NCBI GenBank assembly: GCA_035221665.1
Contig: CM069148.1
Location: forward strand, 49,786,001-49,850,000
Direction of reading: 5' to 3'
DNA: 64,000 nucleotides
Origin: Okamejei kenojei
Lineage: Eukaryota
Below, piece after piece: positions 14,630 through 57,484 of this stretch (position 1 is its first letter; each line of letters opens with the position of its first letter). The position numbers and the translations under genes were made by a program. The notes below the pieces were generated by a model. That model did not search any database, had not been told where the DNA came from, and saw nothing but the letters and a program-made list of their open reading frames with translations.

Positions 14630-15464
14630 TAAGTATATAAAATTATGAGAGGCATATTTAGGGTAGATAGTCAGAACTTCTTTTCGAAGGGTGGAAATAT
14701 CAAATATAAGAGGCCATAGCTTGAAAGCGCGAGTAGCCAGTTTAAAGGAGATGTACGGTGTGGTTTTTTTTTAATGCAGAGGATGGTGGAGCGTTGAAAG
14801 TTGCCAGTGGTGGCGGTGGAGGCAGATATGATAGTGGAGTTTACAGGTATTACAGGTACCTGTAAACCAGGTACAGGTGCCGACAGTTGATAAGCCTCAG
14901 TTCCTTCTGACACGATAGTGGAGTTTATGAGATTTCCTCCACCCAGTACAATCTATCTGAAGGAGGGGTCCGACCGAAAACGTCACCCATGTTCTCCATA
15001 GATGCCGCCTGACCCATTGAGTCACTCCAGCACATTGTATTACATGACATTTTGCCAGGAATGGGCAATATGAGCCAATGGATTAGTTTAGTTTATTGTC
15101 ACATGTACCGAGGTACAGTGAAAAGTTTTTTGTTGCATGCTATCCAATCAGCAGAGGACTAGTCAGCAGAAAGACTATACATGGTAAAATCAAACTGTCC
15201 AAAGTGAACGGATAAATGCAGGAGAATGGGGTTGAGAGTGAAAGATGCAACAACCATGATCTAATGGTCTAATTCTGCTCCCACAACGTATAAATTTAAA
15301 GGGTACAACATTTAGTGCAAGATAAAGTTGGATGGGAGGTCAGGGCTGCAATCTAGTTGGTGAGATGACGGTTCAATTGCGTGATAACAGCTGGGAAGAA
15401 ACTAGCTATTTTAAAACCTAGCCTTGTCGAAACCATGCTTTGGAGGCACTAAGTCATATTTACC

Positions 15465-15766
15465 TCAAAATGGTAAGCGGCACTTTTGCTCAATCCTTTT
15501 CTTTGTCTCCAGATGAAATATTTCACATCTGATTTCCAGGTCATGATCAGATGGTTCTGGAATAAATTCTATTTCTGTTGTTGAAGAGAAGAGGCCAGTG
15601 GTGGCAATCTGAGGTAGACTATTATGGACAGATCCTGTATAGGGTTGTTCTCCTTTGAACCACTTCACCTCAATTTCCTGAGGTACATAATCAGTCAACA
15701 AAACCTTGAAATATGCCACTGAGCTTCTCTCTTTGCAGTAGATTTCAGACACGGTGGGGAAATTAC
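15465..15766 (-). CDS. Exon 10: last Ig C1-like domain (post-TM #6) with stop codon
   Basis: FPTVSEI...[14 protein letters not shown]...[10 protein letters not shown]...[10 protein letters not shown]...LPF*. Acceptor ttttaag|. TGA is followed by G|gtaaat. Confidence 0.87.
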
Positions 15767-18700
15767 CTTAAAATAGAGTAGAAAATGCACATATTGAGAT
15801 GGTCTCACTTTCAACAGTGGATAGTTTAGTTCAGAGATACAGCAAGGAAACACGCTCTTAGGCCCAGCGAATCCACGCTGACCATCGCTAACATGTTCAC
15901 ACTAGTTCTATGTTATCCCATTTTCTCATCCACTCCCTATACACTAGGGGACAATTTACAGAGGTTAATTAACTTTTACTTTAGACTTTGGAGATGCATA
16001 GTGGAAACAGGGCCTTCGGCCCACTGAGTGCGCCGACTAGCGATCAGCCCATTCACTAGCACTAACCGACACACAAGGGACAATTTACAATTTTACCAAA
16101 GCCAATTAACCTACAAACCTGCAGGTCTTTGGGATGTGGGAGGAAACCCACATGGTCAAGGGGAGAACGTGCAAACTCTGCATAGATAGCACCCGAGGTC
16201 AGGATCAAATCCGAGTCTCTGGTGCTGCAAGTCCACAACTCCACCTCTGTGCCACCCAAAATGTTCTTCCTAAACCTTAGTACCCGACTGATCAATTCCA
16301 TCCTTGTTAACAATTATTAAGGCTTTCTACCAGTTTCACTTACCTGGAAGTGGTAAATATAAGTGTTTGGTAATAGCCTCAGGTGTAATTTGATTTTTCA
16401 CCTCAAAGACAAGTTTCTTGTTGTAATGTAACGCTGTGGGTATCAGCTCCAGACAGGAGCACAACTGATAAAATCCATCTTGTTCCTCCTTGGGGTCTGT
16501 ATTCCTGACTCCTTTCAAAATAGGTTTATTGTCCATTAGCCAATTGGTGGAGATTCCATTCTGAGCAAAATTGGTCACGTTGCATTTAAGAACTAGAGGC
16601 TGGCCATAGAATGGAGTTTCTGGCTCAAGAATGATATCAGAAAGCTTTGGAATTCCTACTTGGAAAAATAAAACAGACAACAGTTTAGATATTGCTCAAT
16701 TTTATTATAGTGGAGTTGCTGTAAACAAATCTGTCTTTTCCCAGAACAATTGCACGCAAACTGGCGTTTATTTTAGTTTATTGTCACGTGTACCGAGGTC
16801 TGCGTGCTCTCCAGTCAGTGGACAGGCTATACTTAATTACATTCGAACCATCCTCAGGATAAAGGGAGTAACTTGAATATAGTTTAGTGCAAGATAAATT
16901 ACAGTAAAGTCTGTTCAATTATAGTCTGAAGGTAGAGAGTAGGTCAGGACTGCTCACTAATTGTTGGTAGGATGGTTCAGTTGCCTGATAATAGCACCTT
17001 ACAATCCAATGGTATGAAAATTCACGTCATAAAGGTCATAAATGATAGTAGAATTAGGCCATTCGGCCCATCAAGTCTACTCCGCCATTCAATCATGGCT
17101 GGGGAACAATAATCCTAGTTCTCCACCCACAACAATTTCGTGGCCCGCAATGCGTCACTGTGAAGTCCAGCTGTGTGCACTCAGCTTTAGTGCGTGATTA
17201 GATTTCTTTACTCGATTGCATTTCCAGACACAAGAGTATGGTGCACTGGCATCCTGCCAGATTGTTCCATTTTATCAGTCTGTTGGCAGTCCCAGGTCAA
17301 ACAAAATGAAAATGGTCCCATTTTTGGCTAGAAACACCCTGGTTTACCAAAGATAGACACAGAGTCCAGCGGGTCAGGCGCATCTGTGGAGAACATGGAT
17401 AGGTGACTCAGGCAGCATCAGTGGAGAACATGGATAGAGTTTCACAGAGTGCTGGAGTAACTCAGCGGGTCAGGCAGCATCTGTGCATGGATAGGTGATG
17501 TTTCAGGTCGGGATCCCAAACAAATTCGACAGCTGGAATTTTTGTTGCATTCACTTGATTGCACTTTCCATGTCTTCAGCATGAACCATTAGCAGGCAGT
17601 TAACGTGACCACTGATAGATGCACGCAACAAAGTTCCTAACGCCAATCAAAAATATAGTGGTGAGCATTGGTAAGCAGCTGCTCAAAACAGACAGGTCCC
17701 AACATATTATTGGACAGCAAAACTCTTAGTCAGTTGCCACAGTCAGACACTAACAGACAAGCACCGGGCTTAGTTTAGTTTAGAGATACAGCATGGAAAC
17801 AGGCCCTTCGGCCCACCGAGCCCACGCTGACCAGCGATCCCCGCACACTTACACTATCCTACACACACTAGGGACAATCTGGGTCTCCAATGCTGGGTAA
17901 TAATCCCCCCACAAGTTGTCCCCTTCGCCTCACTGTGCCCCACACTGGTGCACACCCATTTCTCCTATTATCTCCCCTTCCACCTGTATCCCTCCCTTTG
18001 GCTTCACATTGCAATGGGATCAAAGGTACAGGTGCACCATTGATTTTGAGCAACTGGTGGTACAACACCTTTAATCCAGACAAAATTAGGAGAGTGCACT
18101 TGTTATCCTCCCCTCCAACCCACCCCTGGGAAGTCCCCCCAAAAATGTGAAGCCAAGGCTTGGTGAAATGGCTGACCTCTACCTCATCAGGACTTCCGGC
18201 AGCTGACCGGCGAGTCGTATTTGCCCCCTGTGGCCGGCAGATCTGTTCCCAAAGCCAACTTCCGAGGCCGGTGTCTCGGCCACTCAGCGGCCTAGGTGGA
18301 CCGTTCCGGTACTGTTAGACTCCTCTTAGAGGCTGTGACCTCTGTTGGTCCAGCAAACAGATAATCCAGCAAGGCTCTGGAACCAAGGGTGCCAGATAAA
18401 TCAATGGTGGACCTGTAATTTATTGTTACAAGTACATAGAAACATAGAACATAGGCGCAGGAGGCCTTTCGGCCCTTTGAGCCAGCACCGCCATTCATTG
18501 TGATCATGGTTGATCGTCCGCTATCAATAACCCGTGCCTGCCTTCTCCCCATATCCCTTGACTCCACTAGCCCTTAGAGCTCTATCCAACTCTCTCTTAA
18601 ATCCATCCAGTGATTTGGCCTCCACTGCCCTCTGTGGCAGGGAATTTCATAAATTCACAACTCTCTGGGTGAAAAAGTTTTTTCTCACCTCAGTCTTAAA

Positions 18701-21700
18701 TGACCTCCCCTTTATTCTAAGACTATGGCCCCTGGTTCTGGACTCGCTCAACATTGGGAACATTTTTCCTGCATCTAGCTTGTCCAGTCCTTTTATAAAT
18801 TTATATGTTTCCATAAGATCCCCCCTCATTCTTCTAAACTCCAGTGAATACAAGCCTAGTCTTTTCAATCTTTCCTCATATGATAGTCCCGCCATCCCAG
18901 GGATCAATCTCGTAAACCTACGCTGCACTGCCTCAATCACAAGGATGTCCTTCCTCAAATTAGGAGACCAAAACTGTACACAATACTCCAGATGTGGTCT
19001 CACCAGAGCCCTATACAACTGCAGAAAAACCTCTTTACTCCTATACTGAAATCCTCTTGTTATGAATCCCATGCTCTCCAGTACATAGCTAGGTACACTG
19101 AAATTCTTCTTTTGCATACAATCTAATAGAATCTTACTATATATAAACACTAACAAACCTAACTACAAGAGTGTAAGAATAGTAGATTACACTTGATTAG
19201 TTATTGATTAATACAGTTGCCTGGGGTTATGGGGAGAAGGCAGGAGAATGGGATTAAGACGGACAGAGAGATCAGCCATGATTAGACTTGATGAGCTGAA
19301 TGGCCTACACAAGAGTCGCCACATTTCCTAACTAAATTTCCCTTCAAATACCAAAGTTCTTTGAAAAAAAACATTCACTCCTCATCTCTCTTTTTTTGCC
19401 ACCCTTTTGTCACCTTTTCATCCCTAGCCTTTGTCCACCGCATCTGATAATCAAACCCCTCCCCTCACGTGTATCCACCTAACACTCGCCAGGCTTTGTC
19501 ACCTCCCCACCCTTTTTCCTGGCTTTCTCCCCCCATCGATCAGTCTGAACGTGGTCTCCTACCCATGATAATCAAACCCCTCCCCTGACATGTATCCACC
19601 TAACACTCGCAGGCTTTGTCACCTCCCCACCCTTTTTCCTGGCTTTCTCCCCCCCAACAATCAGTCTGAACACGGTCTCCTACCCGTGCTCTCCAGAGAT
19701 GCTGCCTGAAATGAGGGTTACTTCAGCACTTTGTGTCTTTTTTTGTAAACCTGCATCTGCAGTCCGTTGTGTGTTCAAGAACTTCTATAATCTGATTAAA
19801 TTTTATTACAGTACAATGCTTAGAAGTCAGTCCAGGATAACTCAGCAGATAAAATTATTGCGGTAAAAGCACAAAGGAGTAACTCAGTGGGTCAGGCAGC
19901 ACCTCTGGACAACATGGGCAGAAGATTTTTCAGGTTACATAGAACAGTACACCACGGAAAAGGGAGCTTCGGCTCACGACTTCCCTGCATATCCATGTGC
20001 CTATTTAAATGCAATGTACACAACGCTATCGTATCTGCCTCCACCACCACCCTTGTGAGGTGAGGTGACGATCAAGGGTAGGCCTCTGGATAGTGTTGCA
20101 GAGCAGAGGGATCTAGCAACTCATTTCAGACACCCACGAAATGTCTAAAAAAACTTGCCCCACACATCTCCGTTAAAGATACCACCTCTCGATTCATAGC
20201 TATGCCTTGCATTCTTTACATTTCCACCCTGGGGAATAAGGTTCTGACTGTCGACCATATATATGTCTCCATAATATTATATACAGTTGGGACCTTTCTT
20301 CAGACAGGAAGAAGAAAAAGGCAGGGAAACCGAACTAGTCCAAGCCACAAAGTAGATGATGTACGCATGACAAAATCATGAGAGGAATAGAGCAGTTAGA
20401 CTCGCAGTCGCTTGCCCAGAGAAAGGGAATCGAGAACCAGAGGACATAGATTCAAGGTAAATGGAGGAAAGGTTTAATAGGACTCCGAGGGGAAACTTTC
20501 TCACACAACGAGTGGTGGGTGTATACAATTAGGTAGGTACTTGGATAGGACAGGTTTAGAGAGACATGAGCCAAAGGTAAGCAGGTGGTACTAGTGTAGA
20601 TGGGACATGTTGGTCGGTGTGGGCAAGTTGAGCAACTGGGCCTGTTTCCAGGCTGTATGACTTTATATCTCATACCTCCAAGGAGTAAGCTGTGAAAGAC
20701 CTTAGCGGGTCGATGAGAAGTTTGAAAATGAAGAGCCTCAACTTTGAAATCGATTTGATGATCATCAGCTAAAATCATATACTTCCACCGACTTTCACAG
20801 CAGAAGAGGCCAGTGTTTTTATCGATCTCCGGGTCAGTAGAAGTGATCTCTTTATCATCAATCCTCTTCTCATTTTTGAACCACATAAACATAACATCCT
20901 TTGGATAGAAGCCACGTGCATGGCACGAGAATGTTGTCAAATCTCCTGGTTTGGGATATTGTGGTTGAATTTTCATGTCGTCCATTAACGGAGGAGAGAC
21001 TGCAAAAAAACATTAAATCTTGGATAGAATGTAATACAAAAGCAAATGCAGATGCTGGTTTATAGCAAAGAGCCATAAAATAGACATGGATTGAATGTAG
21101 AGAGGATGTTTCTACTAGTGGGAGAGTCTCAGACTCAGAATAAAATGATGTTGTGGCGGCTCCCAAGGTTCGGGCCATTTCCACTATTGAACCCCTCGGC
21201 ACGGGCATGGATGAGTCCAGGGGCGGCCTTTAGCTACAGGGATAAAGGGCTGGGGTTTAGGTGTAATCTCTCTTTTGCAGACTCGTCTGGTCAGGAGAAG
21301 GACAGCGAATAAAATACCTCCCGAAACACCTGGCTCCTCGCCTTCATTTCGGGATTATCATCACGCTACAATGTATCTTTTCAAAGGAGGCGAGGAAGAA
21401 TTTATTTAGTGTGTGTGGAATCTGTGGAATTCATTGCCACAAAAGGCTGTGGATGCCAAGTCAATGGATATTTTTAAGGTGGAGATTGACGGGGGTAATT
21501 AGTACGGGTGTCAGGGGTTATGTGGAGAAGGCAGGAGAATGGGATTGAGGGGGAAAGATAGGTCAACTATGAATCGACGATAAAGTAGACGTGATAGGCT
21601 GAATGGCCAAATGAAATGGCTCCAGTAACTCAGTGGGTCAGGCAGCATCTCTGGAAAACATGGATAGATGACGTTTCGGATTGGGACTGAAGAACGGTCT

Positions 21701-24700
21701 GAAGAGGGGTCCTGACCCAAAACATCACCTATCAATTTTCTTCAGAGGTGTTGCCCACCCAACTGAGTTCCTCCAGCACTTTGTGTCTGTCACTAATTCT
21801 TGCAATTTAAGATTGGAACTCAGACAATAGCCTATAGGTGCAGGAGTAGGCCATTCGGCCCTTCAAGCCAGCACCACCATTCAATGTGATCATGGCTGAT
21901 CATCCCCAATCAGTACCCCGTTCCTGCCTTCTCCCCATATCCCCTGACTCTGCTATCTATGAGCCCTATCTAGCTCTCTCTTGAAAGTATCCAGGGAACC
22001 TATCCACCGTATCCAGAGAACTTATCTAAAGTATCCACCGCCCTCTGAGGCAGAGAATTCCACAAACTCACAACTCTCTGTGAGAAAAAGTGTTTAATCG
22101 TCACTGTGGCCCCTGGTTCTGGACTCCCCCAACATCGGGAACATGTTTCCTGCCTCTAGCGTGTCCAAACTCTTAATAATCTTATATGTTTCAATCAGAT
22201 TCCCTCTCATCCTTCTAAACTCCAGAGTGTACAAGCCCAGCCGCTCCATTCTCTCAGCATATGACAGTCCAGCCCTCCCGGGAATTAACCTTATAAACCT
22301 ATGCTACACTCCCTCAACAGCAAGAATGTCCTTCCTCAAATTAGGGGACCAAAACTGCACACAATACTCCAGGTGTGGTCGCACTGGGGACCTATACAAC
22401 TGCAGAAGGACCTCTTTGCTCCTATATTCAACTCTTTAATGTTATAAAGGCCAACATGCCAATCGCTTTCTTCACTGCCTGCTGTACCTGCATGCTTATT
22501 TTCATAGACTGATGAACAAGGACCCCAGATCCCGTTGTACTTCCCCTTCCACCATTTAGATAATAACCGGCCTTCCTGTTTTTGCTATAAAAGTGGATAA
22601 CCTCACATTTATCCACATTAAACTGCATCTGCTATGCATCTGCCCTCTCACCCAACCTGTCCAAGTCGCCCTGCATTCTCATAGCACCCTACTCATAGTT
22701 CACACTGCCACCCAGCTTTGTGTCATCTACTCATTGCTAATGTTACTTTGAATCCCTTCATCTAAATCATTGATGTATATTGTAAATAGCTGCGGTCCCA
22801 GCACTGAATGTTGCGGCACCCCACTAGTCACTGCTTGTCATTCTGAAAGGGACCCGTTAATCCCTACTCTTTGTTTCCTCTCTGCCAAGCAATTTTCTAT
22901 CCATGTCAGCACTCTACCCCCAATACCATGTGCCCTAATTTTACCCACTAATCTCCCATGTGGGACCTTATCAAATGCTTTCTGAAAGTCCAGGTACACT
23001 ACATCTACTGGCTCTCCCGTGTCCATTTTCCGAGTTACATCCTCAAAAAATCCTCAGAACATTAGTCAAGCATGATTTCTCCTTCGTAAATCCATGCTGA
23101 CTCGAACCGATCCTGTTACTGCTATCCAAATGTGCGGCTATCTCATCTTTTATAATTGACTCCAGCATCTTCCCCGCCATCAATGTCAGGCTAACTGGTC
23201 TATAATTCTGTTTTCTCTCTCCCTCCTTTCTTAAAAAGTGGAATAACATTAGCTACCCTCCAATCCACAGGAACTGATCCTGAGTCTATAGAACATTGGA
23301 AAATTATCATCAATGCATCCACGATTTCTAGAGCCACTTCCTGCAGTACCCTGGGATGCAGACCATCAGGCCCTGGGGATTTATCAGCCTTCAGTCCCAT
23401 CAGTCTATCCAATACCATTTTCTGCCTAATGTGGATTTCCTTCAGTTCCTCCGTCACCCCAGATCTTCTGGCCACTAGTATATCAGGAAGATTGTTTGTG
23501 TCCTCCTTAGTGAAGACGGATCCAAAGTACCTGTTCAACACATCTGCAATTTCCTTGTTCCCCATTATAAATTCATCCTTTTCAGTCTTCAAGGGTCCAA
23601 CTTTGGTCTTAACTAATTTTTTCCTCTCACATACCTAAAGAAGCTTTTACTATCCTCCTTTATATTCATATTTTACTATCCTCCTTTATATAACTTGGAC
23701 CTTGAAGTGCAGGGGCAGTGAAGTGTAATCTTATTGAGGTGTATAAAATCATGAGAGGAATAGATCAGGTAGATGCACAGATTAAGTGAATCGAGGACCA
23801 GAATACATAGGTTTAAGGTGAAGGGGAAAAGATTTAAAAGGAATCTGAGGGATTACTTTTTCCACAAAGGGTGGTGGGTGTATGGAACAAGCTGCCAGAG
23901 GAGGTAGTTGAGGCTGGGACTATCCCAATGTTTAAGTAACAGTTAAACAGGTACATGGTTAGGGCAGGTTTGGAGGGATATGGACCAAACGCAAGCAGGG
24001 GGGACTAGTGTAGTTGGGATATGTTGGCTGGTGTGGGCAAGTTGAGCCAAAGGGCCCGTTTCCATGCTCTATCACTCTAGATAAATGAACAAAAATGGAC
24101 AACAATGTTCAACAATTAAATCTTTCAAAATAAAAAAGAAATAAAACACTTCCTTACTCAGTTTATCCAATTTACAGTCAGTTTTTTTTGTGCCTATGAT
24201 ACTTTCATGCTTGAATTTGCAGGTTAATATCTTTCCACGGTCTTCTCTCGCAGGGATGAACTTCAGATGATCTGTGAAGCTATAACGACCATCGGTTCCT
24301 AAGGTGGGTTCAGTTTCAGCTTTAGTTTCCTGCAATTGTTTGTTATCCATTTTCCAAATAACTTCAATGTTCTTTGGGAAGAAGGAATGTATCCTGCAGG
24401 TTGATTCAGCAAATTCTTCTGCAATTGGGATTTCCGGTGCCAACTTAATGTCTTCACATTCTGGGATTGCTGAAGAGAAAGGAATGAAAAAGCTGTGAAA
24501 GGTTCAGATATCCTGCAGGGATTGTTGTTCCGAGTCGTATAACACGGAAATAGGCCCTTCAGTCAAGCTTGTCCCCAACCAAGATGCCCCATCTCAGCTC
24601 ATCCCATTTATACACGTTTGGCTTGTATCCCTTTAAACCTTTCCTATCCATGTTCAAGTCTTTGAAATGTTGTTATAGTACCTGTCTCAACTACCTCCTC

Positions 24701-27700
24701 TGGCACTCTTTCCATACACCCAACACCTTCTGATCGAAAACGTTTCCTCTCAGATTTCTACTAAATCTTGCCCCTCTCACTTTAAACCTATGCCCTCCGG
24801 TTTGTTGATTCCCCTCTCCTGTGTAAAAGACGCCTCTATAAGATCAGCCTTCAGCCTCCTGCGCTCCAAAAAGGTGTTCTAACCTCCTCAAACTCTCCCT
24901 ATAGCTCAGGCCCTCAAGTCCCAGCAACATCCACATAAATCTTCTCTTCACTCTTAGCAGCTTAATGACATCGTTCCGATAGCAGGGTGAGCAAAACTGA
25001 ACACGGTACACTATATGTTGCCTCACCAACATCTTGTACAACTGTAACATAACATCTTAACTTCTATCCTCAATACCGTGACAAATGAAGGCCAATGTAC
25101 CAAAATCCTTCTTTACCACCCTATCTACCTTTGACACCACTTTCAGGGAACAACCCACCTGCACTCCTAGATCCCTCTGTTCTGCAACATTCCCCAGGGT
25201 CCTACCATTCATTGTGAAGGTTCTGCCTTGGTTTGATTTCCCAAATATGCAGCACCTTGCACCTTATACTTTGGAGATACAGAGTGGAAACAGGCCCTTC
25301 AGCCAACCGAGTCCATGCCGACCATCGATCTCCCCATACTCTACCACAATCCTACACACGGGGCAATTTACAATTTACAAAAGCCAACTAACCTGTACAT
25401 CTGTAGGTCTTTGAAGCGTGGGAGACCGGAGCACCCAGAGAAAACCCACAGTCATAAGGAGAACATACAAACTGTATTTATCTGCATTAAACTCAATTAG
25501 CTATGGCACAGCCCACTTGCACAGATGATCAAAAGCCTAATGTGATTTTTGATAATCATCTTCACTGTTCACCTACTTTGAAAGGGTAATTAAAAAGTGT
25601 TGATATTAAGCCAGATTGGACATTGGTAGCACATTCACCTGAATTATTATCCTGATGCCTGGTCTAATCTGCATATAGATTTGGTAAAATACATTCTTTG
25701 GTCTGCCTGAAGCTTGTTGGTCCCCCAGCAAATGGCCATCAGGGTATGTTGGCAACTGGCACATTCCAGACTGCAGGAGTATGTGCTGAGGGGAAGAGCC
25801 TGCTTCCATTGTATCTTACAATCCATAATAGGAATAGAGAAATTCTGACTGTACCTTTTACGTCAAGTTTGACCTGATGTAGTGTTTTTGAAGCTGTAGC
25901 TGGATGTTCAACTTCACAAACATACACTGTTCCATGGTCTTCGAGAATCGTTGGTGTAAATATTAGAAAACTGGTGACACTATAAGTATTGTCTTCATTG
26001 GTCAACTCATTTAGAGAGTGGGAATATTTAGGCAGATCCTTTTCCCCACCAACAATAACATCTTCGCTTCCATACACAGTTCTCACAATTTCTTTCAATC
26101 CCATGTTTTCTTTTGCTTTGTAGGGTTTTTGGTACCAAGTGATGGCCAGTGGTCTTGGCGTAAATCCGTCAATAGGACAAGACAAAGCAATCACCTCTTC
26201 GTGAATAATGTGAGGCGGCGCGAGAATATTAATCATCTTTGGTGCAACTGTTTTTATTTAAGGAAAAAGGAGAGAAGATTTCATGGTTTTAGAATTTACA
26301 GTGTATTGTATAAAACTTGCTGAATTTATTTTGTCTAGTGCAGTTGAGATATAACTGCAATCCAGCGATTTTAACAGACCCCACACACACTAGTAACATT
26401 TACTGCATAGTAGAGATAATATATATAAGCATCTGGATAAACAGGGTCTGATCAGGAACAGTCAACATGGATTTGTGCCTGGAAGGTCATGTTTGACAAA
26501 CCTTCTTGAATTTTTTTAAGCGATAACTAGGGAAATTGATGAGGGTAAAGCAGTGGATGTTGTCTATATGGATTTCAGTAAGGCCTTTGACAAGGTTCCC
26601 CATGGAAGGTTGGTTAAGAAGGTTCAATCTTTGGGAGTTAATGGCGGAGTAGCAAGATGGATTCAACAGTGGCTGAATGGGAGATGTCAGAGAGTAATGG
26701 TGAGTGGCTGTTTGTCAGGTTGGAAGCCGGTGACCAGTGGGGTGCCTCAGGGATCTGTGTTGGGTCCACTGTTGTTTGTCATGTACATCAATGATCTGGA
26801 TGATGGGGTGGAAAATTGGATAAGTAAGTATGCAGATGATACTAAGATAGGTGGTGTTGTGGATAATGAAGCAGATTAATGTGAAGGGGAACTTCTTTAC
26901 TCAGAGGGTGGTGGCTATGTGGAATGAGCTTCCAGCAGAAGTGGTGGAGGCAGGATCGATTTTAACATTTAATAGTAAAGTGGATAGGTATATGGACGTG
27001 AAGGGAATGAAGGGGTATGGTCTGAGTGCAGGTAGATGGGACTAGGGGAAAACAAATGGTCGGCACGGACTGGAAGGGCCGAGAGGGCCTGTTTCCGTGC
27101 TGTAATTGTTATATGGTTATATCGGATTATTCGTGAGATATAATTACAGAAAGGACTATATACGGCTAATTTAAGAGTATATAGTTAAAACAGAGTCATT
27201 TTGGGCAGCACAGTGGCGTAGCTGGTAGAGCTGCTGTCTCATAGAGCCGGACCAGGTTCGATCCTGACCTCCAGTGCTGTCTGTGTGGAGTTTGCACATT
27301 CTCCCTATGACCGCGTGGGTTTCCCCCTTACATCCTAAAGGCATGTGGGTTTGTAGGTTAATGCCCTCAGAATGCAGGGAATAGGTGAGGAAGTGGAAAA
27401 ACCTAGAACAGGTGATCGATGGTTGCTGCGGACTTGGTGGGTGGAAGAGCCTGTTTCCATGTTGTATCTCTAAGCTAAACTACATTTTACCTGAGGTATT
27501 GATTTAGTAAGACGCTTTTATAAACAAATAAAAATTGTTTTCTTGACATCATTTAATCTACTTTAGAAATACAGCATGCAAACAGGCCCTTCAACCAAAC
27601 AAATCCGCACCAACCATCAATCACCCGTTCACACTAGTTCTACATTACCCCACTTTTTCTACCACTCCCTACACACTGGGGGCAATTTACGGTGGCCAAT

Positions 27701-30700
27701 TAACCTACAAACCCGCATATCTTTGGAATATGGGATGAAACCGGAGCATCCGGAGAAAACCCAGCAGTCACAAGGAGAACGTGCAAACTCCACACAGACA
27801 GCACCCCAGGTCAAACTCCGAGCCTCTGCCACTGTGAGGCAGCAGCTCTACATGCTGCACCGTGTGCCACACTGTATACTTACTTCCTTCAACTTTCAAT
27901 TGGATGGATTTAGTAATAGGCTTTCCAAGAGTGCTATGTGAAACTTGAAGAGAGAGGACAGTTCCGTCATCTTTATCAATTTCAGGGATGAATATAATTT
28001 TGCATTTCGCACTGGAGTGGCCATCGTGTGTAACAGCTGTCATCTCAATGTGGATAGACTCATTCGCAGAGTCGCCATTGCAAATAAGTCTTTGCTGGTC
28101 TATAGCTTCAGGTGCTTGCGAGTGGCCAGGTGCAGAGCTCCATTGGAAAATCTTACTTTGATTTCCCCCCTCTCTTTGTAGAAAACAACAAAGCGAAATG
28201 TTTGCAGGCTTATATCCTGATATATGACAAGTCAGAACAGTTTCTTCCAAATGTATAATGTGTGGTGGTTTGGCGATTTCAGACACTTTAGGAGGTACTA
28301 GGAAAAAAAAATGTTGATGTTATTCTTCTTTTGGAAGAGGTTTATGTCACTTTAAAAGTATCAGAACAAATTCATCATCCATCTACATAAAACATCCACT
28401 GTAATAAATATGGATGTAAGAACACCTGGCTCAATATCTCATTACATTTTAAGTATCCCCATGGAAGGTTGGTTAAGAAGGTTCAATCTTTGGGTGTTAA
28501 TGGCGGAGTAGCAAGATGGATTCAACAGTGGCTGAATGGGAGATGTCAGAGAGTAATGGTGATTGGCTGTTTGTCAGGTTGGAAGCCGGTGACCAGTGGG
28601 GTGCCTCAGGGATCTGTGTTGGGTCCACTGTTGTTTGTCATGTACATCAATGATCTGGATGATGGGGTGGAAAATTGGATAAGTAAGTATGCAGATGATA
28701 CTAAGATAGGTGGTATTGTGGATAATGAAGTAGATTCTCAAAGTCTACAGAGAGATTTGGGCCATTTGGAAAAGTGGGCTGAAAGATGGCAGATGGAGTT
28801 TAATGCTGATAAGTGTGAAGTGCTACATCTTGGCAGGACAAATCAAAATAGGACGTACATGGTAAATGGTAGGGAATTGAGGAATGTTGTGGAACAGAGA
28901 GATCTAGGAATAACTGCATAGTTCCCTGAAGGTGGAATCACATGTAGATGGGGTGGTAAAGAAAGCCTTTGGTGTGCTGGCCTTTATAAATCAGAGCATT
29001 GAATATAGGAGTAGGGAAGTAATGTTAAAATTGTACAAGGCATTGGTAAGACCAATTCTGGAGTATGGTGTACAATTTTGGTCGCCTAGTTATAGGAAGG
29101 ATGTCAACAAAATAGAGAGAGTACAGAGGAGATTTACTAGAATGTTGCCAGGGTTCCAGCAACTATGTTACAGAGAAAGGTTGAACAAGTTAGGTCTTTA
29201 TTCTTTGGAGCGCAGAAGGTTAAGGGGGGGACTTGATTGAGGTCTTTAAAATGATGAAAGGGATAGACAGAGTTGACGTGGATAAGCTTTTCCCATTGAG
29301 GGTAGGGAAGATTCAAACAAGAGGGCATGACATGAGAATTAAGGGACAGAAGTTTAGGGGTAACGTGAGGGGGAACTTCTTTACTCAGAGGGTGGTGGCT
29401 GTGTGGAATGAGCTTCCAGCAGAGGTGGTGGAGGCAGGATCGATTTTAACATTTAAAAGTAAAGTGGATAGGTATATGGACGTGAAGGGAATGGAGGGGT
29501 ATGGTCTGAGTGCAGGTAGATGGGACTAGGGGAAAACAAATGGTCGGCACGGACTGGAAGGGCCGAGAGGGCCTGTCTCCGTGCTGTAATTGTTATATGG
29601 TTATATGGTTATCTCCACATTTAGAAATAACATGAGAATCAGACATCAAAAATAAAGCAAAAGATATGAATAAATAAATCGAAATCACAATGCAAGAAAA
29701 AAGAACTGGAAATGCAGAGGTGAAAAATACTGGTGTACCTCAAGAATAAAGAAAGATCATCCTATGAAGGTTAGACATAAATAGAAATCAATGGATGTGG
29801 AGAGGATGCTTCCACAAGTGGGAGAGTCTAGGACCAAAGGAACAGCCTCAGAATAAAAGGAAGTACCTACCTTTAGAAAGGAATCACAAACCTATCAATT
29901 ATTTAAAACATAGAAACATAGAAAATAGGTGCAGGAGGAGGACATTCGGCCCTTCGAGCCATTCATTGTGATCATGGCTGATCGTCCCCTATCAATAACC
30001 CGTGCCTGCCTTCTCCCCATATCCCTTGACTCCACTAGCCCCTATCTAACTCTCTCTTAAATCCATCCAGTGATATGGCCTCCACTGCCCTCTGCGGCAG
30101 GGAATTCCATAAATTCACAACTCAGGTGAGAAAAAACTTTTTCACACATAGTCTTAAATGATCTCCCCTTTATTCTAAGATTGTGGCCCCTGATACTGGA
30201 CTCTCCCAACATTGGGAACATTTTTCCTGCATCTAGCTTGTCCAGTCCTTTTATAATTTTATATGTTTCTATAAGATTGGCCCTCAGCCTTCTAGAGTCA
30301 AGTGAATACAAGCCTAGTCATTTCAATCTTTCATATGACAGTCCCGCCATCCCAGGGATCAATCTCGTGAACCTATGCTGCACTGCCTCAATCACAAGGA
30401 TGTCCCTCCTCAAATTAGGAGACCAAAACTGTACACAATACTCCAGATGTGGTCTCACCAAAGTCCTATACAACTGCAGAAGAACCTCTTTAATCCTCTA
30501 CTGAAATCCTCTTGAAGGCCAACATTTCATTAGCTTTCTTCACTGCCTGCTGTACCTGCACGGCAACTTTCAGTGACCGGTGTACAAGGACACCCAGGTC
30601 TCGTTGTACCTCCCCCTTACCTAACCTATCCCCATTGAGATAATAATCTGCCCCCTTGTTCTTGCCACCAAAGTGGATAACCTCACATTTATCTCTATTA

Positions 30701-39184: not shown

Positions 39185-39233
<49 letters not shown>

Positions 39234-45200: not shown

Positions 45201-48200
45201 TACAATTCTAAATGTAGAAACACCAATAACAGAGGCAATTAGAAGGGACTGCTAACAAGAGTTATTGATAAAAATTCCGAACGATAGATGGGAAAAAAAA
45301 TTATATGGAAATAAATGTTCAATTAATGTAAGACATAATCTAATTCAATTTAAAATTTTACATAGACTATATTATTCGAAAACTAGACTGAATAAAATAT
45401 TTTCAAATGTTTCACCCATCTGTGATAAATGTCTAACTCAAAATGCCACTATAGCACATTCCTTTGTCTCTTGTACAAAACTGTATAAATTTTGGAATGA
45501 AATGTTTGGAATTTTTACAAAACTATTTAACACAAAATTGAACCCCAATACAGAACTGATTATCTTTGGATCAATGGAAGAGGGAAGTAAACTAACTATA
45601 TTCCAAGAAGCTTTTCTTAATTACGGTCTAATAACAGCAAAAAAGCTTATACTCAAATTTTGGAAAAACACAACCACGCCAACATTCAAAATGTGGATTT
45701 GAAACATGTCTGAAATGCTACATCTTGAAGAAATGAGATTCCTCCTAATAGGCAAAGTTGATCTATTCTTAAAGACTTGATTGTGGATCTTTTATCAACT
45801 TTTTACAAGCATATGGTGCAACATAACATAACCGTAGAAATTAAATGGTTTAGGACCGGGTGACGGATGGGCAAAAATACGAAATAGGTAGATCTCCTAT
45901 TTCTTTACTTTCTCCTTTTCTTTCAATCTGTTTAGCTTCTCATCTCTGTCCTTTATTTCTTAGGCTATCCGTTTCTACTCGCTTGTCTATCTATTCCGAC
46001 ACACTTTATTTATTTTTTCTCTCACTATTCTTTTATTATTAAATCATAAATACGAAGTTGTACAAGAATGGAAATTTGTATGTATGTATTAGGTACTCAA
46101 GTACCACACTATTGTACTCACTTCTAACAAAAATAAACAACAACAAAAAAACAAAAAAAAAAAACAAACAAAAAAAACAAAAAAAAACATACACACTAGG
46201 GGCAATTTATAGAAGTCCACACCGTCACAGGGAAAATGTACAAACTCCATACAGATAGCACCCGTAGTAGGATGGAACTTGAGTCACTGGCACTGGAAGG
46301 CAGCAAATCTATCACTGTGCCACCCACAGCCTTTCCCCACAATCAACTAGAATGCCGATGTAATGAACTGTAAGTGGACTGTTTTACAAAAAAAGACACA
46401 AATAGTTGGAGTAACTTAGTGGGTCAGGCAGCATTTCTGGCGAAACATGGACAAGTGATGTTTTCAGTCAGAACACTTGTGGTACTCCAGCATTTTATGT
46501 CCTTTTCAGGGTAGAAAGTTGATGTTGGTGGTATTAGCTACAAGGAGAAGATGGACAGACTTGCATTGTTTTCTCTGGAACGTCAGAGGTTGCGTAGACA
46601 CATGGTGGAGATGTGTAGGGTATTTTTAGTTTGCAGGTGTATCGCTACACAGCTTGTAACTACATATATAACGATTGAGTGAGTAATTTTTTGTGATCTG
46701 TTTCAAAGAGTAGATTGTCAGAACGTTTTATCCCTGGGTGAAAATGTCAAAGACATATACACAGAGGTCAAATTCATTAGAATTCAGGCTTGAGAGATAC
46801 GGCGTGGAAACAGGCCCTTTAGACCACCGAGTCCATGCCGACCAGCGATCACCACGTACACTAGCACTATCCCACACCGTAGGGAAAATTTAACAATTTT
46901 ACCAAAGCCAAATTAACTACAAACCTGCAGATGTTTAGAGGGTGGGAGGAAACCGGAGCACCCGGAGAAAACCCATCACAGGGAGAACGTACAAACTCCA
47001 CACTGACGAGGTCAGGATTGAACCGGTTTCGCTGGAATGTGAGATAGCAGCTCTACCCACTGCGCCACTGTGCACGCCTGAAATATTTGTTAGTTGTTTT
47101 TACCTGAAACAATCATTGAAGATTCGCCGCTTCCCTGGTCTGGGCTGATAAAGACTACGCAGGTATAATCTCCTTCTTCATTAAATTGAACACGTGGGAG
47201 GAAGAGAGAAGCAATTCCCTTCTTTAACTCATCATCATAAATCGCAGCATCTTTTCTGTAAGATGTATGCCTTCCTCCGCTGAATTTATACACTTCATCC
47301 TTGGTGGAAGCCCCGAACTTTTTATGGTACCAGATGACACCCACATTTTGAAGGTTGATCTCACTGGTCTTGTAACCAGACACTCGGCATTCAAGAAGGG
47401 CATCTTTATTCACAGGGACTTCCACCATTCTTGAATTCATTGACACAACCAGATCTCCTCCTTCTGGAATCATAGAGAAACAAGTTGCCAGTCTACAAAC
47501 AAATCGCCAAATAAAAAGTAGGAAACAAATTTTTAGAGAATTTTGCCAGCACGGTGATGCAGTGTGAAAATGTAGTTTAGAGATAAAGTGGAAACAGCCC
47601 CTTTGGCACATCGAATCCGTGCCGACGAGCAATACACTAGTGTTATCCTGGCGAATCTGTGGGATTCTTTGCCACGGAAGGCTGTGGAGGCAGTCAATGG
47701 ATATAATTAAGGCAGAGGTAGATAGATTTTTGATTAGGACGGGTGTCAGGGGTTATGGAAGGTAGGAGAATCAGGTTAGGAGGGAGAGACAGATCAGTCA
47801 TGACTGATTGGTGGAGTAGACTTGATGGGCCAAATAGACTAATTCTACTCCTTTCACTTATGTTCTTATGATCCTACACACTAGGGACAATTTATAAGTT
47901 TACAGAAACCAATTAACCTATGAAACTGCACGCAGTCACAGGGTGAACGTACAAACTCCGTTCACACAGCACTTGAAAATATATCAATTATTCGTATTGA
48001 CTTTAGCAAAATAATCCCAATAATCTGAAGAAGGGTCTCGACCCAAAATGTCACCTATTTCTTCGCTCCATAGATGCTGCCTCACCCGCTGAGTTTCTCC
48101 AGCATTCTTATCTAATTTTAAATTCATTTGTTGATAAACATTGCCCTTAAGGTTCCTATTAAATCTTTCTCCTCTCACCTTAAACCTATGTGGTTCTTGA

Positions 48201-57200: not shown

Positions 57201-57348
57201 CCTTGGTGAGGGGGCGGCGGGATCGCCCTTGTCTCTGGGTGGGAGAGAGGTCCCGTCCCAGCCCCGCCTTACCTGCGGCCCCGAGCAGGGCGAGCACAGC
57301 GATGAGTCCCGGGAACAGGGCCGGCCACAAGTCGCCACTGCACGGCAT
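15465..57348 (-). CDS. NCR3LG1: Whole spliced gene, 10 coding exons, ~976 aa: B7-H6/NCR3LG1-like protein, SP-V-C1-TM followed by six C1-type Ig domains
   Basis: Exons 57273-57348, 47104-47463, 38436-38756, 33029-33145, 27884-28297, 25855-26247, 24158-24469, 20676-20999, 16344-16655, 15465-15766 join in one frame with GT-AG phase-1 introns (2931 nt including stop). V and C1 domains resemble B7-H6 by motif. The symbol means 'like'; orthology is not proven. Confidence 0.75.
15825..16257 (-). mobile_element. HE1-type SINE copies
   Basis: Similar to the 2475-2775 copy. Confidence 0.75.
16344..16655 (-). CDS. Exon 9: Ig C1-like domain (post-TM #5)
   Basis: [22 protein letters not shown]...[12 protein letters not shown]. 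Tandem acceptor caag/tag| (start could be 16658), donor |gtaagt. Confidence 0.88.
18029..18415. mobile_element. Tc1/mariner-type MITE
   Basis: 18-bp TIRs CAGGT(G/C)CACCATTGATTT flanked by TA on both sides. Confidence 0.8.
18435..19068 (-). mobile_element. CR1 3' fragment
   Basis: [15 protein letters not shown] motif and CATAGAAA tail. Confidence 0.9.
19445..19690. repeat. ~121-bp tandem duplication in a Penelope-derived tail
   Basis: Two near-identical tgataatcaaacccctcccc...ggtctcctaccc units. Confidence 0.8.
20676..20999 (-). CDS. Exon 8: Ig C1-like domain (post-TM #4)
   Basis: [20 protein letters not shown]...TGLF...FKVEALH. Acceptor ttttttgcag|, donor |gtatga, 324 nt. Confidence 0.9.
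21152..21370 (+). mobile_element. Solo LTR, 219 bp, Gypsy-like
   Basis: TGTGGCG...CGCTACA termini, 4-bp TSD ATGT, AATAAA at 21308, inserted in a CR1 fragment. Confidence 0.78.
21830..23670 (-). mobile_element. CR1 ORF2 3' half
   Basis: RT motifs in several broken ORFs, CR1 3' UTR. Confidence 0.9.
24158..24469 (-). CDS. Exon 7: Ig C1-like domain (post-TM #3)
   Basis: [16 protein letters not shown]...DGRYS...LTCKFKHES. Acceptor tttctcttcag|, donor |gtaagg, 312 nt. Confidence 0.9.
24690..25260 (-). mobile_element. Degenerate CR1 fragment
   Basis: LQLYKMLVR...VQFCSP motif. Confidence 0.75.
25855..26247 (-). CDS. Exon 6: Ig C1-like domain (post-TM #2)
   Basis: [18 protein letters not shown]...[10 protein letters not shown]...[14 protein letters not shown]. 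Acceptor aacag|, donor |gtacag, 393 nt. Confidence 0.9.
26410..27122 (+). mobile_element. CR1 (TATGGT-tail family), internally deleted
   Basis: [11 protein letters not shown] and YADDTK, then an abrupt jump at ~26877 to the 3' end. Confidence 0.9.
27203..27483 (+). mobile_element. HE1-type SINE
   Basis: A box TGGCGTAGCTGG, B box GGTTCGATCC, CTAAA tail. Confidence 0.85.
27560..27869 (-). mobile_element. HE1-type SINE
   Basis: Reverse-orientation copy next to the exon-5 donor. Confidence 0.8.
27884..28297 (-). CDS. Exon 5: divergent Ig C1-like domain (post-TM #1)
   Basis: [30 protein letters not shown]...[29 protein letters not shown]. Acceptor tttttcctag|, donor |gtaagt, 414 nt. Confidence 0.88.
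28457..29612 (+). mobile_element. CR1 3' 1.15 kb (TATGGT-tail family)
   Basis: RT and C-terminal ORFs, tail TATGGTTATATGGTTAT. Confidence 0.92.
29907..32125 (-). mobile_element. CR1 ORF2 fragment
   Basis: RT motifs and CATAGAAA tail. Confidence 0.9.
32335..32361. repeat. (TATC)n microsatellite
   Basis: Directly visible. Confidence 0.95.
33029..33145 (-). CDS. NCR3LG1: Exon 4: transmembrane segment
   Basis: [39 protein letters not shown]: hydrophobic run followed by basic residues. Strong acceptor ttttttcttacag|, phase-1 donor |gtaaag, 117 nt. Reading through the donor gives a stop at 32982. Confidence 0.85.
33517..33797 (+). mobile_element. Penelope-like element 3' end inside an HE1 SINE (33225-33875)
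   Basis: [27 protein letters not shown] endonuclease C-terminus, pyrimidine tract, then the CTGAAGAAGGG...CCCGAAAC terminal motif. Confidence 0.75.
34708..37800 (-). mobile_element. CR1 ORF2 (APE + RT), TATGGT-tail family
   Basis: APE ORF 36881-37648 (ISETW, YRPP, GDFN, SDH) and RT ORFs. A short opposite-strand 3' end of the same family is inserted at ~36201-36280. Confidence 0.92.
37820..38260 (-). mobile_element. Penelope-like GIY-YIG endonuclease fragment
   Basis: [10 protein letters not shown]...[15 protein letters not shown] Cys-rich linker and GIY-YIG start. Confidence 0.8.
38436..38756 (-). CDS. NCR3LG1: Exon 3: Ig C1-set domain (B7-H6-like)
   Basis: [16 protein letters not shown]...[14 protein letters not shown]...[10 protein letters not shown]: CxxxxFYP, W, DGTY and CxVxHxSL motifs. 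Acceptor tttacag|, donor |gtaagt, 321 nt. Confidence 0.93.
39055..43601 (+). mobile_element. Full-length CR1 LINE (~4.5 kb): 5' UTR, ORF1 (Cys-rich + GDSL/SGNH esterase), ORF2 (APE + RT), a few stops
   Basis: [15 protein letters not shown] and DGLHLN esterase motifs, RT ORF 41710-42774, (TTTCTATG)n tail, imperfect TSD TAA(C/T)ACA. Confidence 0.93.
39197..39265. repeat. (TA)n microsatellite
   Basis: Directly visible. Confidence 0.95.
43662..44877 (+). mobile_element. CR1 3' part (TATGGT-tail family)
   Basis: Very similar to 28457-29612. Confidence 0.9.
46790..47075 (-). mobile_element. HE1-type SINE
   Basis: Similar to the other copies. Confidence 0.8.
47104..47463 (-). CDS. NCR3LG1: Exon 2: Ig V-set domain (B7-H6-like)
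   Basis: GGDLVVSM...LECRV...[11 protein letters not shown]...[26 protein letters not shown]: canonical C, W and D-x-G-x-Y-x-C-like motif. Acceptor ttccag|, donor |gtaaaa, 360 nt. Confidence 0.93.
48349..49110. repeat. Fold-back: ~170-bp inverted arms around an AGTGTACACT-containing minisatellite
   Basis: 48349-48520 is the reverse complement of 48941-49110; tandem gagtgtacactggtgt units lie between them. Confidence 0.9.
49775..54757 (-). mobile_element. DIRS1-like tyrosine-recombinase retrotransposon, full length but frameshifted (gag, RT, RNase H, methyltransferase-like domain, YR)
   Basis: RT NLKDAY...LPNG...CLDD, RNase [26 protein letters not shown] methyltransferase-like, YR HSTRAAS...AGW...FY, inverted termini and an internal complementary region at 49993-50083. 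Confidence 0.93.
56184..56286 (+). mobile_element. Short Penelope-derived insertion within a CR1
   Basis: 15-bp TSD CATTTGTTCTAACTA at 56169-56183 and 56287-56301. Confidence 0.75.
57273..57348 (-). CDS. NCR3LG1: Exon 1: signal peptide [25 protein letters not shown]
   Basis: ATG in good Kozak context (gcgaccATG), hydrophobic core ending in small residues, phase-1 donor G|gtaagg, inside a CpG-rich island. Confidence 0.85.
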
Positions 57349-57472: not shown

Positions 57473-57484
57473 ACTTTCACTTTC
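57473..57484 (-). promoter_or_regulatory. IRF-binding element / ISRE (GAAAGTGAAAGT)
   Basis: Exact match to the GAAANNGAAA(G/C)T IRF consensus, ~125 bp upstream of the exon-1 ATG. Confidence 0.65.

Follow-up and report, generated by a model that had tools for sequence, protein, structure and literature searches.

Two questions are raised by a locus of the ray Okamejei kenojei in which six immunoglobulin (Ig) exons follow the single transmembrane (TM) exon of a B7-H6-like gene: whether all of these exons form one gene and, if they do, on which side of the membrane the six domains would lie. C1-set domains, a hallmark shared by antibodies, T-cell receptors, and MHC molecules, are not known to act in the cytosol.

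Gene structure of the locus

The gene runs on the minus strand from 57348 to 15465 of the window, by which we mean the whole 64-kb stretch of DNA that was analyzed. All ten of the in-frame exons with phase-1 introns proposed by the sequence-only reading are present, each bounded by AG acceptors and GT donors as its place in the gene requires. Their order is signal peptide (SP), V domain, C1-set domain (C1a), TM exon ending in KIFRK, and six Ig exons (A1 to A6), here called the array. The features are as follows, with a slash marking the exon-intron border in donor sites.

57473..57484, minus strand: ISRE/IRF-E-like motif GAAAGTGAAAGT, a candidate by sequence reading, ~125 nt upstream of the ATG
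57273..57348, minus strand: exon 1, SP; ATG at 57348; 25 codons plus 1 base
47104..47463, minus strand: exon 2, B7-type V-set domain; Pfam V-set 1.7e-08
38436..38756, minus strand: exon 3, C1a, ectodomain C1-set domain; Pfam C1-set 3.8e-11; perfect donor AAG/GTAAGT
33029..33145, minus strand: exon 4, TM exon; EPE, a 31-residue apolar run, and KIFRK
27884..28297, minus strand: exon 5, A1, the Ig domain that follows the TM exon, divergent and carrying a long loop insert; placed by RNA-derived contigs and orthology
25855..26247, minus strand: exon 6, A2, C1-set, both cysteines, best conserved in the array; Pfam C1-set 1.4e-08; acceptor read
24176..24469, minus strand: exon 7, A3, C1-set, both cysteines; Pfam C1-set 2e-12
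20676..20999, minus strand: exon 8, A4, C1-set, Val in place of the F-strand cysteine; Pfam C1-set 4.1e-06; acceptor read
16344..16658, minus strand: exon 9, A5, C1-set, Phe in place of the F-strand cysteine; Pfam C1-set 5.1e-11; perfect donor CAG/GTAAGT
15465..15766, minus strand: exon 10, A6, C1-set, Val in place of the B-strand cysteine, stop included; Pfam C1-set 2.2e-06

The summed exons (2916 nt) give a product of 971 aa, which replaces the 976-aa model given earlier. The leader in exon 1 is hydrophobic, aligns with the leader of a sawfish ortholog (P0001), and ends at the donor CAG/GTAAGG after 57273. The donor of the TM exon is weak (AAA/GTAAAG), and read-through would meet a stop after 15 codons. 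At the other end of the gene, the A6 stop codon TGA directly adjoins a donor-like G/GTAAAT; the sawfish ortholog stops at the same residue, and orthologs of other lineages continue into more domains. No further Ig exon or second hydrophobic exon was found in the 64-kb window, and no hydrophobic exon lies within 15 kb after A6, in agreement with the earlier statement that there is no second TM segment. The motif upstream of the ATG is followed by four GC-rich repeats of ~20 nt each, and the A5-A6 intron probably holds a SINE-like repeat (most matching sequencing runs share a constant 0.36 of words).

Transcript evidence for a single gene

The sequence-only reading had named transcripts that join exon 4 to exon 5 as its test. 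Such transcripts exist: the junction from 33029 to 28297, TM exon to A1, is spliced in contigs of two runs (X2 and X11) from two studies. In contig X2 record 24 (3185 nt, depth 37.5), positions 27884-28298 continue without a gap on 33030-33147. By length, its upstream remainder of 783 nt equals C1a, V, and SP plus ~26 nt, and its downstream remainder of 1869 nt equals A2-A6 (1628 nt) plus 241 nt of UTR, so that the remaining lengths fit a full 10-exon mRNA. In contig X11 record 1 (2244 nt, depth 31.9), the match to A1 has 0 mismatches and ends precisely on the exon borders, and the depth of 18.5 in bin 32952-33135 equals 31.9 × 107/184, indicating that this contig also covers the TM exon. The run types of X2 and X11 are recorded no more precisely than "RNA? 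(a guess)" and "?". A depth of >30 in runs of 83 to 141 million letters is impossible for single-copy genomic DNA, and we take the contigs to be RNA-derived. Runs X12 and X14, from related organisms, carry the genomic unspliced form.

These observations support a single gene that contains both the B7-H6-like ectodomain exons and the Ig array exons. The stop met 15 codons into TM-exon read-through would suit a different account, in which two genes have been wrongly joined: a short B7-H6-like one whose last exon is the TM exon, and a multi-C1 gene that stands on its own. That account is contradicted by the spliced contigs across the TM-A1 junction, and it also has against it the retention of the junction in gene models of >20 species (see below) and the fact that no leader or V exon was found between 33029 and 28297. 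We consider it exceedingly unlikely and reject it.

Domain identity of the ectodomain and the array

The exons of the window were searched one by one, and the full-length fold was that of the database ortholog P0001. Relative to the curated Pfam cut-offs (26 bits for V-set and 21 bits for C1-set, PF07654), exon 2 scores 35 bits as V-set, and the C1-set scores are 43.6 bits for C1a, 35.4 for A2, 47.7 for A3, 27.5 for A4, 43.2 for A5, and 28.4 for A6, with no Pfam match for A1. Five of the six post-TM domains thus qualify as C1-set, and the original count of six C1-type domains stands for A2-A6, with A1 left outside the Pfam definition. A1 is orthologous to residues 293-431 of P0001 (167 bits); the equivalent stretch of the P0001 model is a beta-sandwich with pLDDT of about 85-90 apart from the loop at 348-369, and every array domain in that model has an Ig fold with high pLDDT.

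The amino-terminal part of the protein has the layout of the B7 family: a leader, a V-set domain, a C1-set (not C2) domain, and, immediately behind it, one TM segment. Among solved structures, the best relatives of the V exon are CD276 (6e-15) and then NCR3LG1/B7-H6 (2.5e-12), the top relative of C1a is human B7-H6 (NCR3LG1; 3.3e-15), and A3 lies nearest to the constant domains of Ig heavy chains and to SIRP (best, 5e-14). Foldseek aligned the ortholog model to B7-H6 crystal structures with TM-scores of 0.89-0.91, rmsd of 2.0-2.9 Å, and identity of 30-32%. Several orthologs, including those of alligator, snake, and frog, are named NCR3LG1 by NCBI, and the ectodomain, which had been called B7-H6-like from the sequence alone, is B7-H6-like by both sequence and fold. 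The locus is best explained as the B7-H6 (NCR3LG1) ortholog of a cartilaginous fish, judging from these matches. Some fragments of its relatives have been auto-named SIRP-like.

Conservation across jawed vertebrates

With the A3 exon as query, 493 proteins were found at E ≤ 1e-3. At least 40 gene models share V-C1-TM-A1 to A6, domain by domain, among them models from fishes (sawfish, horn shark, chimaera, electric ray, coelacanth, lungfish, and reedfish) and from tetrapods (newt, caecilian, frog, lizard, snake, and alligator). The same domain order, which the sequence-only reading had proposed to look for in other lineages, extends from chimaera to alligators; the groups in which it was seen are chimaera, sharks, rays, bichirs, lungfish, coelacanth, amphibians, squamates, and alligators, and teleosts, birds, and mammals are not among them. 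A mid-chain TM segment followed by at least two C1-like domains is present in 73 of the top 150 representatives. The TM-to-array junction is conserved in gene models of >20 species, including the chimaera entry V9K7L7, which we take to be cDNA-derived, and keeps a motif of basic residues followed by (V/I/A)-P-P-K-x-(S/T)-(D/E)-I. Within A2, the motif C-P-I-(D/N)-G-F-(K/T)-P-R-P-L is kept from ray to coelacanth. A1-A4 are conserved about as well as the ectodomain, and A5 and A6 less; identity to the sawfish ortholog is 66-73% per array domain versus 75-79% for the ectodomain. Cartilaginous and bony vertebrates split roughly 450 million years ago. Long multi-C1 proteins with a C-terminal TM segment (gar and others) were rejected as orthologs, as they are weak generic C1 matches only.

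Conservation extends to the cysteines, including the positions at which they are lost. Both cysteines and the Trp of the V domain are invariant in 26 of 26 orthologs, and the canonical disulfide is invariant in V and C1a; it is lost in four of the six array domains (A1, A4, A5, and A6). The C-strand Trp is kept in nearly all domains, and both cysteines are kept in C1a, A2, and A3 (in A2, the B-strand Cys in 22/22 and the F-strand Cys in 20/22 orthologs). Where a half-cystine is lost, its replacement by V, L, I, M, or F is conserved across orthologs: A4 has the B-strand Cys in 16/16 orthologs with V, M, or I at the F position, and A5 has the B-strand Cys in 19/21 orthologs with Phe at the F position in 14 and Cys in 6. 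As judged across the aligned orthologs, the pattern of disulfide loss in the array is the same since the common ancestor.

Loss of four of six disulfides could also mark the array as decaying baggage, a pseudogenized remnant in the 3′ mRNA with no selected function. The same could be said of the failure of Pfam to recognize A1, of the codon changes in A1 relative to a close relative (10 nonsynonymous and 6 synonymous), and of a protein that is shorter than in other lineages and stops just before a donor-like site. We nevertheless reject this account and regard it as highly improbable, given six open exons of ~100 codons with intact phase-1 splice sites and positional orthology held since the cartilaginous/bony vertebrate split. 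The array-domain identities to sawfish, the conservation of the cysteine-loss pattern itself, and the high pLDDT of all domains likewise speak against it.

Predicted topology of the array

The best 19-residue Kyte-Doolittle window of the TM exon scores 2.82, with an acidic N flank and a basic C flank (+4), and the exon 4 segment is predicted to resemble a textbook type I anchor. This hydrophobic-then-basic pattern recurs at the same place in ~60 homologs, the sequence itself being unconserved. The cytoplasmic location predicted for the array follows from general rules of membrane topology, aided by two compositional signals, both weak. The main mRNA would include all ten exons. By way of a cleavable signal peptide, V and C1 would enter the ER lumen and go on to the cell surface; transfer would halt at the 31-residue apolar segment, which has EPE on its N side and KIFRK on its C side; and the six C1-set domains (~690 aa) would be made on the cytoplasmic side, beginning ~5 residues from the membrane. 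Such a placement of A1-A6 is predicted to set them apart from characterized C1-set members, which are extracellular or luminal.

Composition bears on this placement in both directions. Across 38 homologs, which are not independent of one another, N-x-S/T sequons are enriched in the ectodomain (observed/expected ratio, 1.48) and stand at chance in the array (0.98); extracellular Ig constant domains are also poor in sequons, and the low density in the array is therefore a weak signal. Loss of the canonical disulfide in four of the six array domains speaks for the cytoplasmic side. The simplest explanation for the retention of both cysteines of A2 and A3 in nearly all species, however, is a disulfide that forms in an oxidizing compartment, which argues against a cytoplasmic array. 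Among the ortholog tails we found no convincing cytoplasmic motifs, and an ITIM-like pattern is absent from most of them.

The conserved A2 and A3 pairs, together with the extracellular location of other C1-set domains, would be accounted for if the array had its role outside the cell. Under this reading, the TM exon would be a cassette exon, the skipped form a secreted, nonrearranging protein like an Ig heavy chain, with V and seven C1-set domains, and the array a passenger in the TM form. All exons are phase 1-1, so skipping of the TM exon keeps the frame and would give a secreted protein. TM-less isoforms are in fact predicted in Hemitrygon akajei (isoform X6, an exact 38-aa deletion) and Bombina bombina (isoform X2, a 34-aa deletion), with deletions that match the TM exon exactly, and two more models (P0032 and P0045) also lack the TM segment. 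The weak TM-exon donor in this window is of the kind seen in cassette exons, and there are related multi-C1 proteins with a C-terminal TM segment, namely 34 of the top 150 matches and, separately, UrIg2 (PMC12227049). On the other hand, the TM exon is present in both assembled contigs of this species and is kept in six of seven predicted Hemitrygon isoforms. Many paralogs and lineages retain the TM segment before the array, with no split into short membrane and secreted genes, and the array lacks sequon enrichment and has lost the disulfide in four of its six domains. Assembled contigs lose rare variants, and a minor TM-less mRNA of O. kenojei could be missed by them. Because TM-less isoforms are predicted in two other species, we treat a secreted, all-extracellular form as a live alternative, albeit an unlikely one.

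A luminal or extracellular array might also arise with the TM exon included, if the hydrophobic segment were no simple stop-transfer anchor and were cleaved or slipped through. The A2 and A3 cysteine pairs and the extracellular rule for C1-set domains would again be satisfied, but the length and hydrophobicity of the apolar run, its acidic and +4 flanks, and the recurrence of the pattern in ~60 homologs make this improbable. We favor, with modest confidence, a single type I protein with a cytoplasmic array under selection, a judgment that covers no specific partner.

Comparison with known systems

Human B7-H6 (NCR3LG1), the NKp30 ligand, resembles the ray gene in its signal peptide, B7-type V domain, C1-set domain, and single TM segment; the window holds no sequence for the receptor itself. 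The cytoplasmic tail of human B7-H6 is ~170 aa long and is described as Gag-related, with ITIM, SH2, and SH3 motifs. The ray tail differs in consisting of six Ig exons and is not of this human type, which is known here by description. Butyrophilins (e.g., BTN3A1) resemble the ray gene in combining a V-C ectodomain of the B7 family with one TM segment and a large folded cytoplasmic domain, predicted in the case of the ray. Their cytoplasmic domain is B30.2/PRYSPRY, a precedent for inside-out coupling in the B7 family. None of the ten ray exons has a Pfam match to B30.2/PRYSPRY, and the ray tail is instead a C1-set array, so that the analogy is one of logic only, with no homology between the tails.

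The heavy chains of UrIg/UrIg2, IgM, IgW, and IgNAR, like the ray gene, have one V domain and many C1-set domains, each on a phase-1 exon; the ray gene is nonrearranging, as is UrIg, and for C1a and A3, UrIg2 ranks among the better matches with a solved structure. UrIg/UrIg2-type and Ig heavy chains have a VJ-type V domain and a TM segment that closes the chain, behind the final C domain (PMC12227049). In the ray gene, by contrast, the V domain is B7-type, with no J-like F-G-x-G motif at the end of the V exon, and the TM segment falls between the first and second C1 domains. The SIRP family (V-C1-C1) also places C1-set domains in a molecule that is not an antigen receptor, and SIRP alpha and gamma are among the best A3 matches; all SIRP Ig domains, however, are extracellular and precede the TM segment.

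Titin, obscurin, and MyBP-C resemble the array in their tandem Ig-fold domains, which mostly lack the canonical disulfide and are cytosolic in those proteins, and titin I65-I70 is the top whole-chain Foldseek match of the ortholog model. The difference is that their domains are I-set and that they are soluble proteins of the sarcomere, lacking a signal peptide, an ectodomain, and a TM segment, whereas the array domains score as C1-set. In the literature we found no paper on post-TM Ig domains in B7-H6 or on such a topology, though an earlier mention is possible.

Implications

In a cytoplasmic location, the array would be a rigid module that couples NK-cell ligand display to the cell interior, as a scaffold, anchor, or binding platform. 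Assignment of a scaffold, sensor, or decoy function is speculation, and the idea that B30.2/TRIM-type cytosolic proteins that bind Ig use it as a platform is pure speculation. A fuller proposal, that the array is a selected cytoplasmic module of B7-H6 that dates from the jawed-vertebrate ancestor, was lost in mammals, and links the cell interior to NK-ligand display or signaling, seems to us evenly balanced between right and wrong. Under either reading of the location of the array, gene models with this architecture are already public but uncharacterized.

If the TM-less form is functional, a nonrearranging, secreted V-(C1)7 molecule would exist beside a membrane NK ligand, which bears on how heavy chains of the Ig type arose. 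A cytoplasmic array, for its part, would break the rule that confines C1-set Ig domains to the extracellular or luminal side and would make B7-H6 the second case of a large folded cytoplasmic domain in the B7 family, the butyrophilins being the first. Nonmammalian B7-H6 would then have an intracellular half three times the size of its ectodomain, kept for roughly 450 million years. This would change the evolutionary reading of the NKp30/B7-H6 axis and call for an explanation of the array's replacement in mammals.

Gene structure and fold

Ten open exon-sized frames lie on the minus strand of the window, bordered by AG acceptors and GT donors and all in phase 1, as the sequence-only reading had proposed. 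The six Ig exons that follow the transmembrane (TM) exon are referred to here as the array.

57348-57273, minus, SP exon: signal peptide
47463-47104, minus, V exon: Pfam V-set, above the curated cut-off
38756-38436, minus, C1a exon: Pfam C1-set, above the curated cut-off
33145-33029, minus, TM exon: EPE, a 31-residue apolar run, then KIFRK
28297-27884, minus, A1 exon: no Pfam detection
26247-25855, minus, A2 exon: Pfam C1-set, above the curated cut-off
24469-24176, minus, A3 exon: Pfam C1-set, above the curated cut-off
20999-20676, minus, A4 exon: Pfam C1-set, above the curated cut-off
16658-16344, minus, A5 exon: Pfam C1-set, above the curated cut-off
15766-15465, minus, A6 exon: Pfam C1-set, above the curated cut-off

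Exon lengths sum to 2916 nt, so the earlier model length of 976 aa is corrected to 971 aa. Six C1-type domains had been proposed after the TM; Pfam recognizes A2 to A6 (exons 6 to 10) as such and does not detect A1. When every exon was searched against the window with tblastn, there was no further Ig exon beyond this set and no second hydrophobic exon, in keeping with the single TM segment first described. The apolar run of the TM exon reaches 2.82 in its best Kyte-Doolittle window; the donor of this exon is weak, and read-through meets a stop 15 codons on.

Among all solved structures, the best match of the C1a exon is human B7-H6 (3.3e-15), the NKp30 ligand, and the V exon matches B7-H3 (6e-15) and B7-H6 (2.5e-12). 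Window exons were compared singly, and the full-length protein is represented by its database orthologue from the sawfish Pristis pectinata. In an AlphaFold2 model of this orthologue (26-sequence alignment; mean pLDDT, 84.5), residues 1 to 224 superpose on B7-H6 crystal structures with TM-scores of 0.89 to 0.91 and rmsd of 2.0 to 2.9 Å, which together with the C1a match bears out the B7-H6-like ectodomain. All array domains, A1 among them, form confident beta-sandwiches in this model, and the TM is a low-confidence helix. The nearest solved likenesses of A3 are Ig heavy-chain constant domains and SIRP.

Splicing in RNA-derived contigs

We compared four public sequencing runs with positions 27800-33300, the stretch from A1 to the TM exon. 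A 3185-nt contig from run X2 (depth, 37.5) covers 27884-28298, and its next base resumes at 33030-33147; the splice between A1 and the TM exon falls where predicted, with 1 to 2 bases of alignment ambiguity, and the TM-A1 junction therefore exists in RNA. The join of exon 4 to exon 5 (33029->28297), on which the earlier reading turned, is thus present. The 5′ remainder of the contig (783 nt) equals C1a, V, SP, and ∼26 nt, and the 3′ remainder (1869 nt) equals A2 to A6 (1628 nt) and 241 nt; by this fit of lengths, the remainder would hold the other model exons. In run X11, from a separate 2024 study, a 2244-nt contig carries A1 with 0 mismatches and ends exactly at the A1 exon borders. The X11 depth of 18.5 in bin 32952-33135 is that expected if a contig of depth 31.9 covers the bin's 107 TM-exon bases. 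These two runs are recorded only as "RNA? (a guess)" and "?"; they are small (X2, 141 million letters; X11, 83 million) and both contig depths exceed 30, too high for single-copy DNA, and we therefore take them to be transcript assemblies. The unspliced genomic form at the A1 and TM-exon places is present in runs X12 and X14, which come from related organisms. A minor TM-less mRNA, which contigs can miss, may coexist.

Upstream region and repeats

An ISRE/IRF-E-like motif, GAAAGTGAAAGT (57473-57484, minus), lies ∼125 nt upstream of the ATG and suggests candidate interferon-inducible expression. After it come four tandem GC-rich units, each of ∼20 nt (57375-57450, minus), and the 5′ end of the X2 contig falls ∼26 nt before the ATG. 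The window, which is vertebrate DNA, has many LINE and SINE fragments, and LINE pieces with endonuclease/RVT_1 open reading frames (ORFs) fill its introns:

28469-29529, plus, LINE fragment
35392-37648, minus, LINE fragment
40454-43509, plus, LINE fragment
54732-56677, minus, LINE fragment

The 4.7-kb TM-A1 intron is nearly all LINE derived and has extreme read depth. Between the SP and V exons, the first intron holds a retroelement (50360-54415, minus) with a reverse-transcriptase ORF (51899-52435; Pfam RVT_1, 3.7e-12) and an upstream ORF (53441-54415) of 324 aa, rich in Pro, Ser, Gly, and Ala and without a Pfam match. Two intronic copies of a SINE-like element of ∼250 nt (16040-16330 and 27640-27870, minus; 74% mean column identity) are probably the source of the constant 0.36 word share of the A5-A6 stretch in many unrelated runs. 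An imperfect tandem array at 48447-49012 (units of 16 to 60 nt, core GTGAGTGTACACTGG) gives long spurious His/Thr/Ser/Val-rich ORFs; its last block (48905-49012, unit ACACCAATGTACACTCACTC) appears by eye to be in inverse orientation.

Conservation of domain order

When the A3 exon served as the query of a full HMMER search of 1.8 billion representatives, 493 proteins matched at E ≤ 1e-3, 168 of them at 1e-10 and 16 at 1e-30. The best match was a 977-aa "uncharacterized protein" of P. pectinata with 66 to 79% identity per domain to the window exons. All matches were labeled with the window's eight Ig exons, and the order V-C1a-TM-A1-A2-A3-A4-A5-A6 recurred with positional orthology in cartilaginous fishes (chimaera, horn shark, sawshark, sawfish, electric ray), bony fishes (coelacanth, both lungfish paralogues, reedfish, bichir), and tetrapods (newts, caecilian, several frogs, lizard, snake, alligators), with one to three extra domains in some lineages. 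The shared exon order sought in other vertebrates thus extends from chimaera to alligators. In NCBI, the proteins from frog, snake, and alligator carry the name "natural cytotoxicity triggering receptor 3 ligand 1." Among the entries named in 30 look-ups, none was from a teleost, bird, or mammal. In ∼60 homologues the hydrophobic segment and 2 to 4 basic residues lead directly into the A-strand of the next Ig domain, (V/I/A)-P-P-K-x-(S/T)-(D/E)-I, and a mid-chain TM with at least two C1-like domains behind it is present in 73 of the 150 best representatives. One of these, a frog model of 2158 aa (P0006), has nine C1-like matches after the TM. With P0014 (both from Dendropsophus), P0026, and P0027, it makes up a related family in which V-C1-C1 precedes a TM near residue 330 and a long C1-like run follows; the TM-then-array layout is therefore not confined to the B7-H6 orthologue.

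In the 26-sequence alignment, A1 to A4 are conserved about as well as V and C1a, and A5 and A6 less so. Against a close relative's DNA, A1 has 6 synonymous and 10 nonsynonymous codon changes, clustered in a loop insert; these small numbers point to moderate constraint on A1, the least conserved domain. The window and sawfish proteins stop at the same residue after A6. Orthologues of chimaera, electric ray, coelacanth, lungfish, and amphibians continue into more domains, and many orthologues (P0019, P0004, P0007, P0034, P0169, P0040, P0159) share a conserved extra terminal Ig-like domain, missing from the window gene, with an acidic or Ser-rich linker before it and a C terminus of ...LKL-x. The stop after A6 looks like a lineage-specific truncation, which fits the phase-1 donor-like site right behind it (TGA, then immediately G|GTAAAT; 15458-15467, minus); the 15 kb downstream of A6 yielded no relic exons.

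Placement of the array

Standard rules predict an N-out, C-in orientation for the TM-containing product: its leader is cleavable, and its long apolar segment is preceded by an acidic flank and followed by a +4 flank. Sequon and disulfide patterns agree, weakly, with a cytoplasmic array. In a set of 38 homologues, the ectodomain is enriched in N-x-S/T sequons relative to shuffled sequences (103 observed, 69 expected; 1.21 per 100 aa), and the array is at chance (130 observed, 132 expected; 0.57 per 100 aa). The canonical disulfide of V and C1a is invariant (26/26); A1, A4, A5, and A6 have an apolar residue in place of one half-cystine, a pattern common to rays and coelacanth. Extracellular constant domains are also normally low in sequons, and both cysteines of A2 and of A3 are retained in nearly all species, which speaks for a noncytoplasmic array. 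The array could work mainly in a secreted isoform: all exons are phase 1-1, so skipping the TM exon keeps the frame and would yield a secreted V-(C1)7 protein, and such isoforms are predicted in stingray (an exact 38-aa deletion in 1 of 7 isoforms) and toad (a 34-aa deletion). The chance-level sequons of the array beside the enriched ectodomain, and the lost half-cystines, argue weakly against this, and we regard it as rather unlikely. Weighing the signals on both sides, we lean toward an array that is cytoplasmic and selected, and give little weight to the remaining readings.

Our full-text literature searches turned up no account of Ig domains behind a B7-H6 TM or of cytoplasmic C1-set domains, though an earlier mention in the 2012/2015 work on B7-H6 evolution is possible, and no characterized protein of V-C1-TM-array topology, as the sequence-only reading had supposed. 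The sharks' nearest recently described multi-C1 gene, UrIg2, has its TM at the C terminus (PMC12227049), unlike the mid-chain TM here. Gene models of V-C1a-TM-array proteins are already public; what appears to be new is the recognition that this architecture exists in RNA, is ancient, and has an odd topology.
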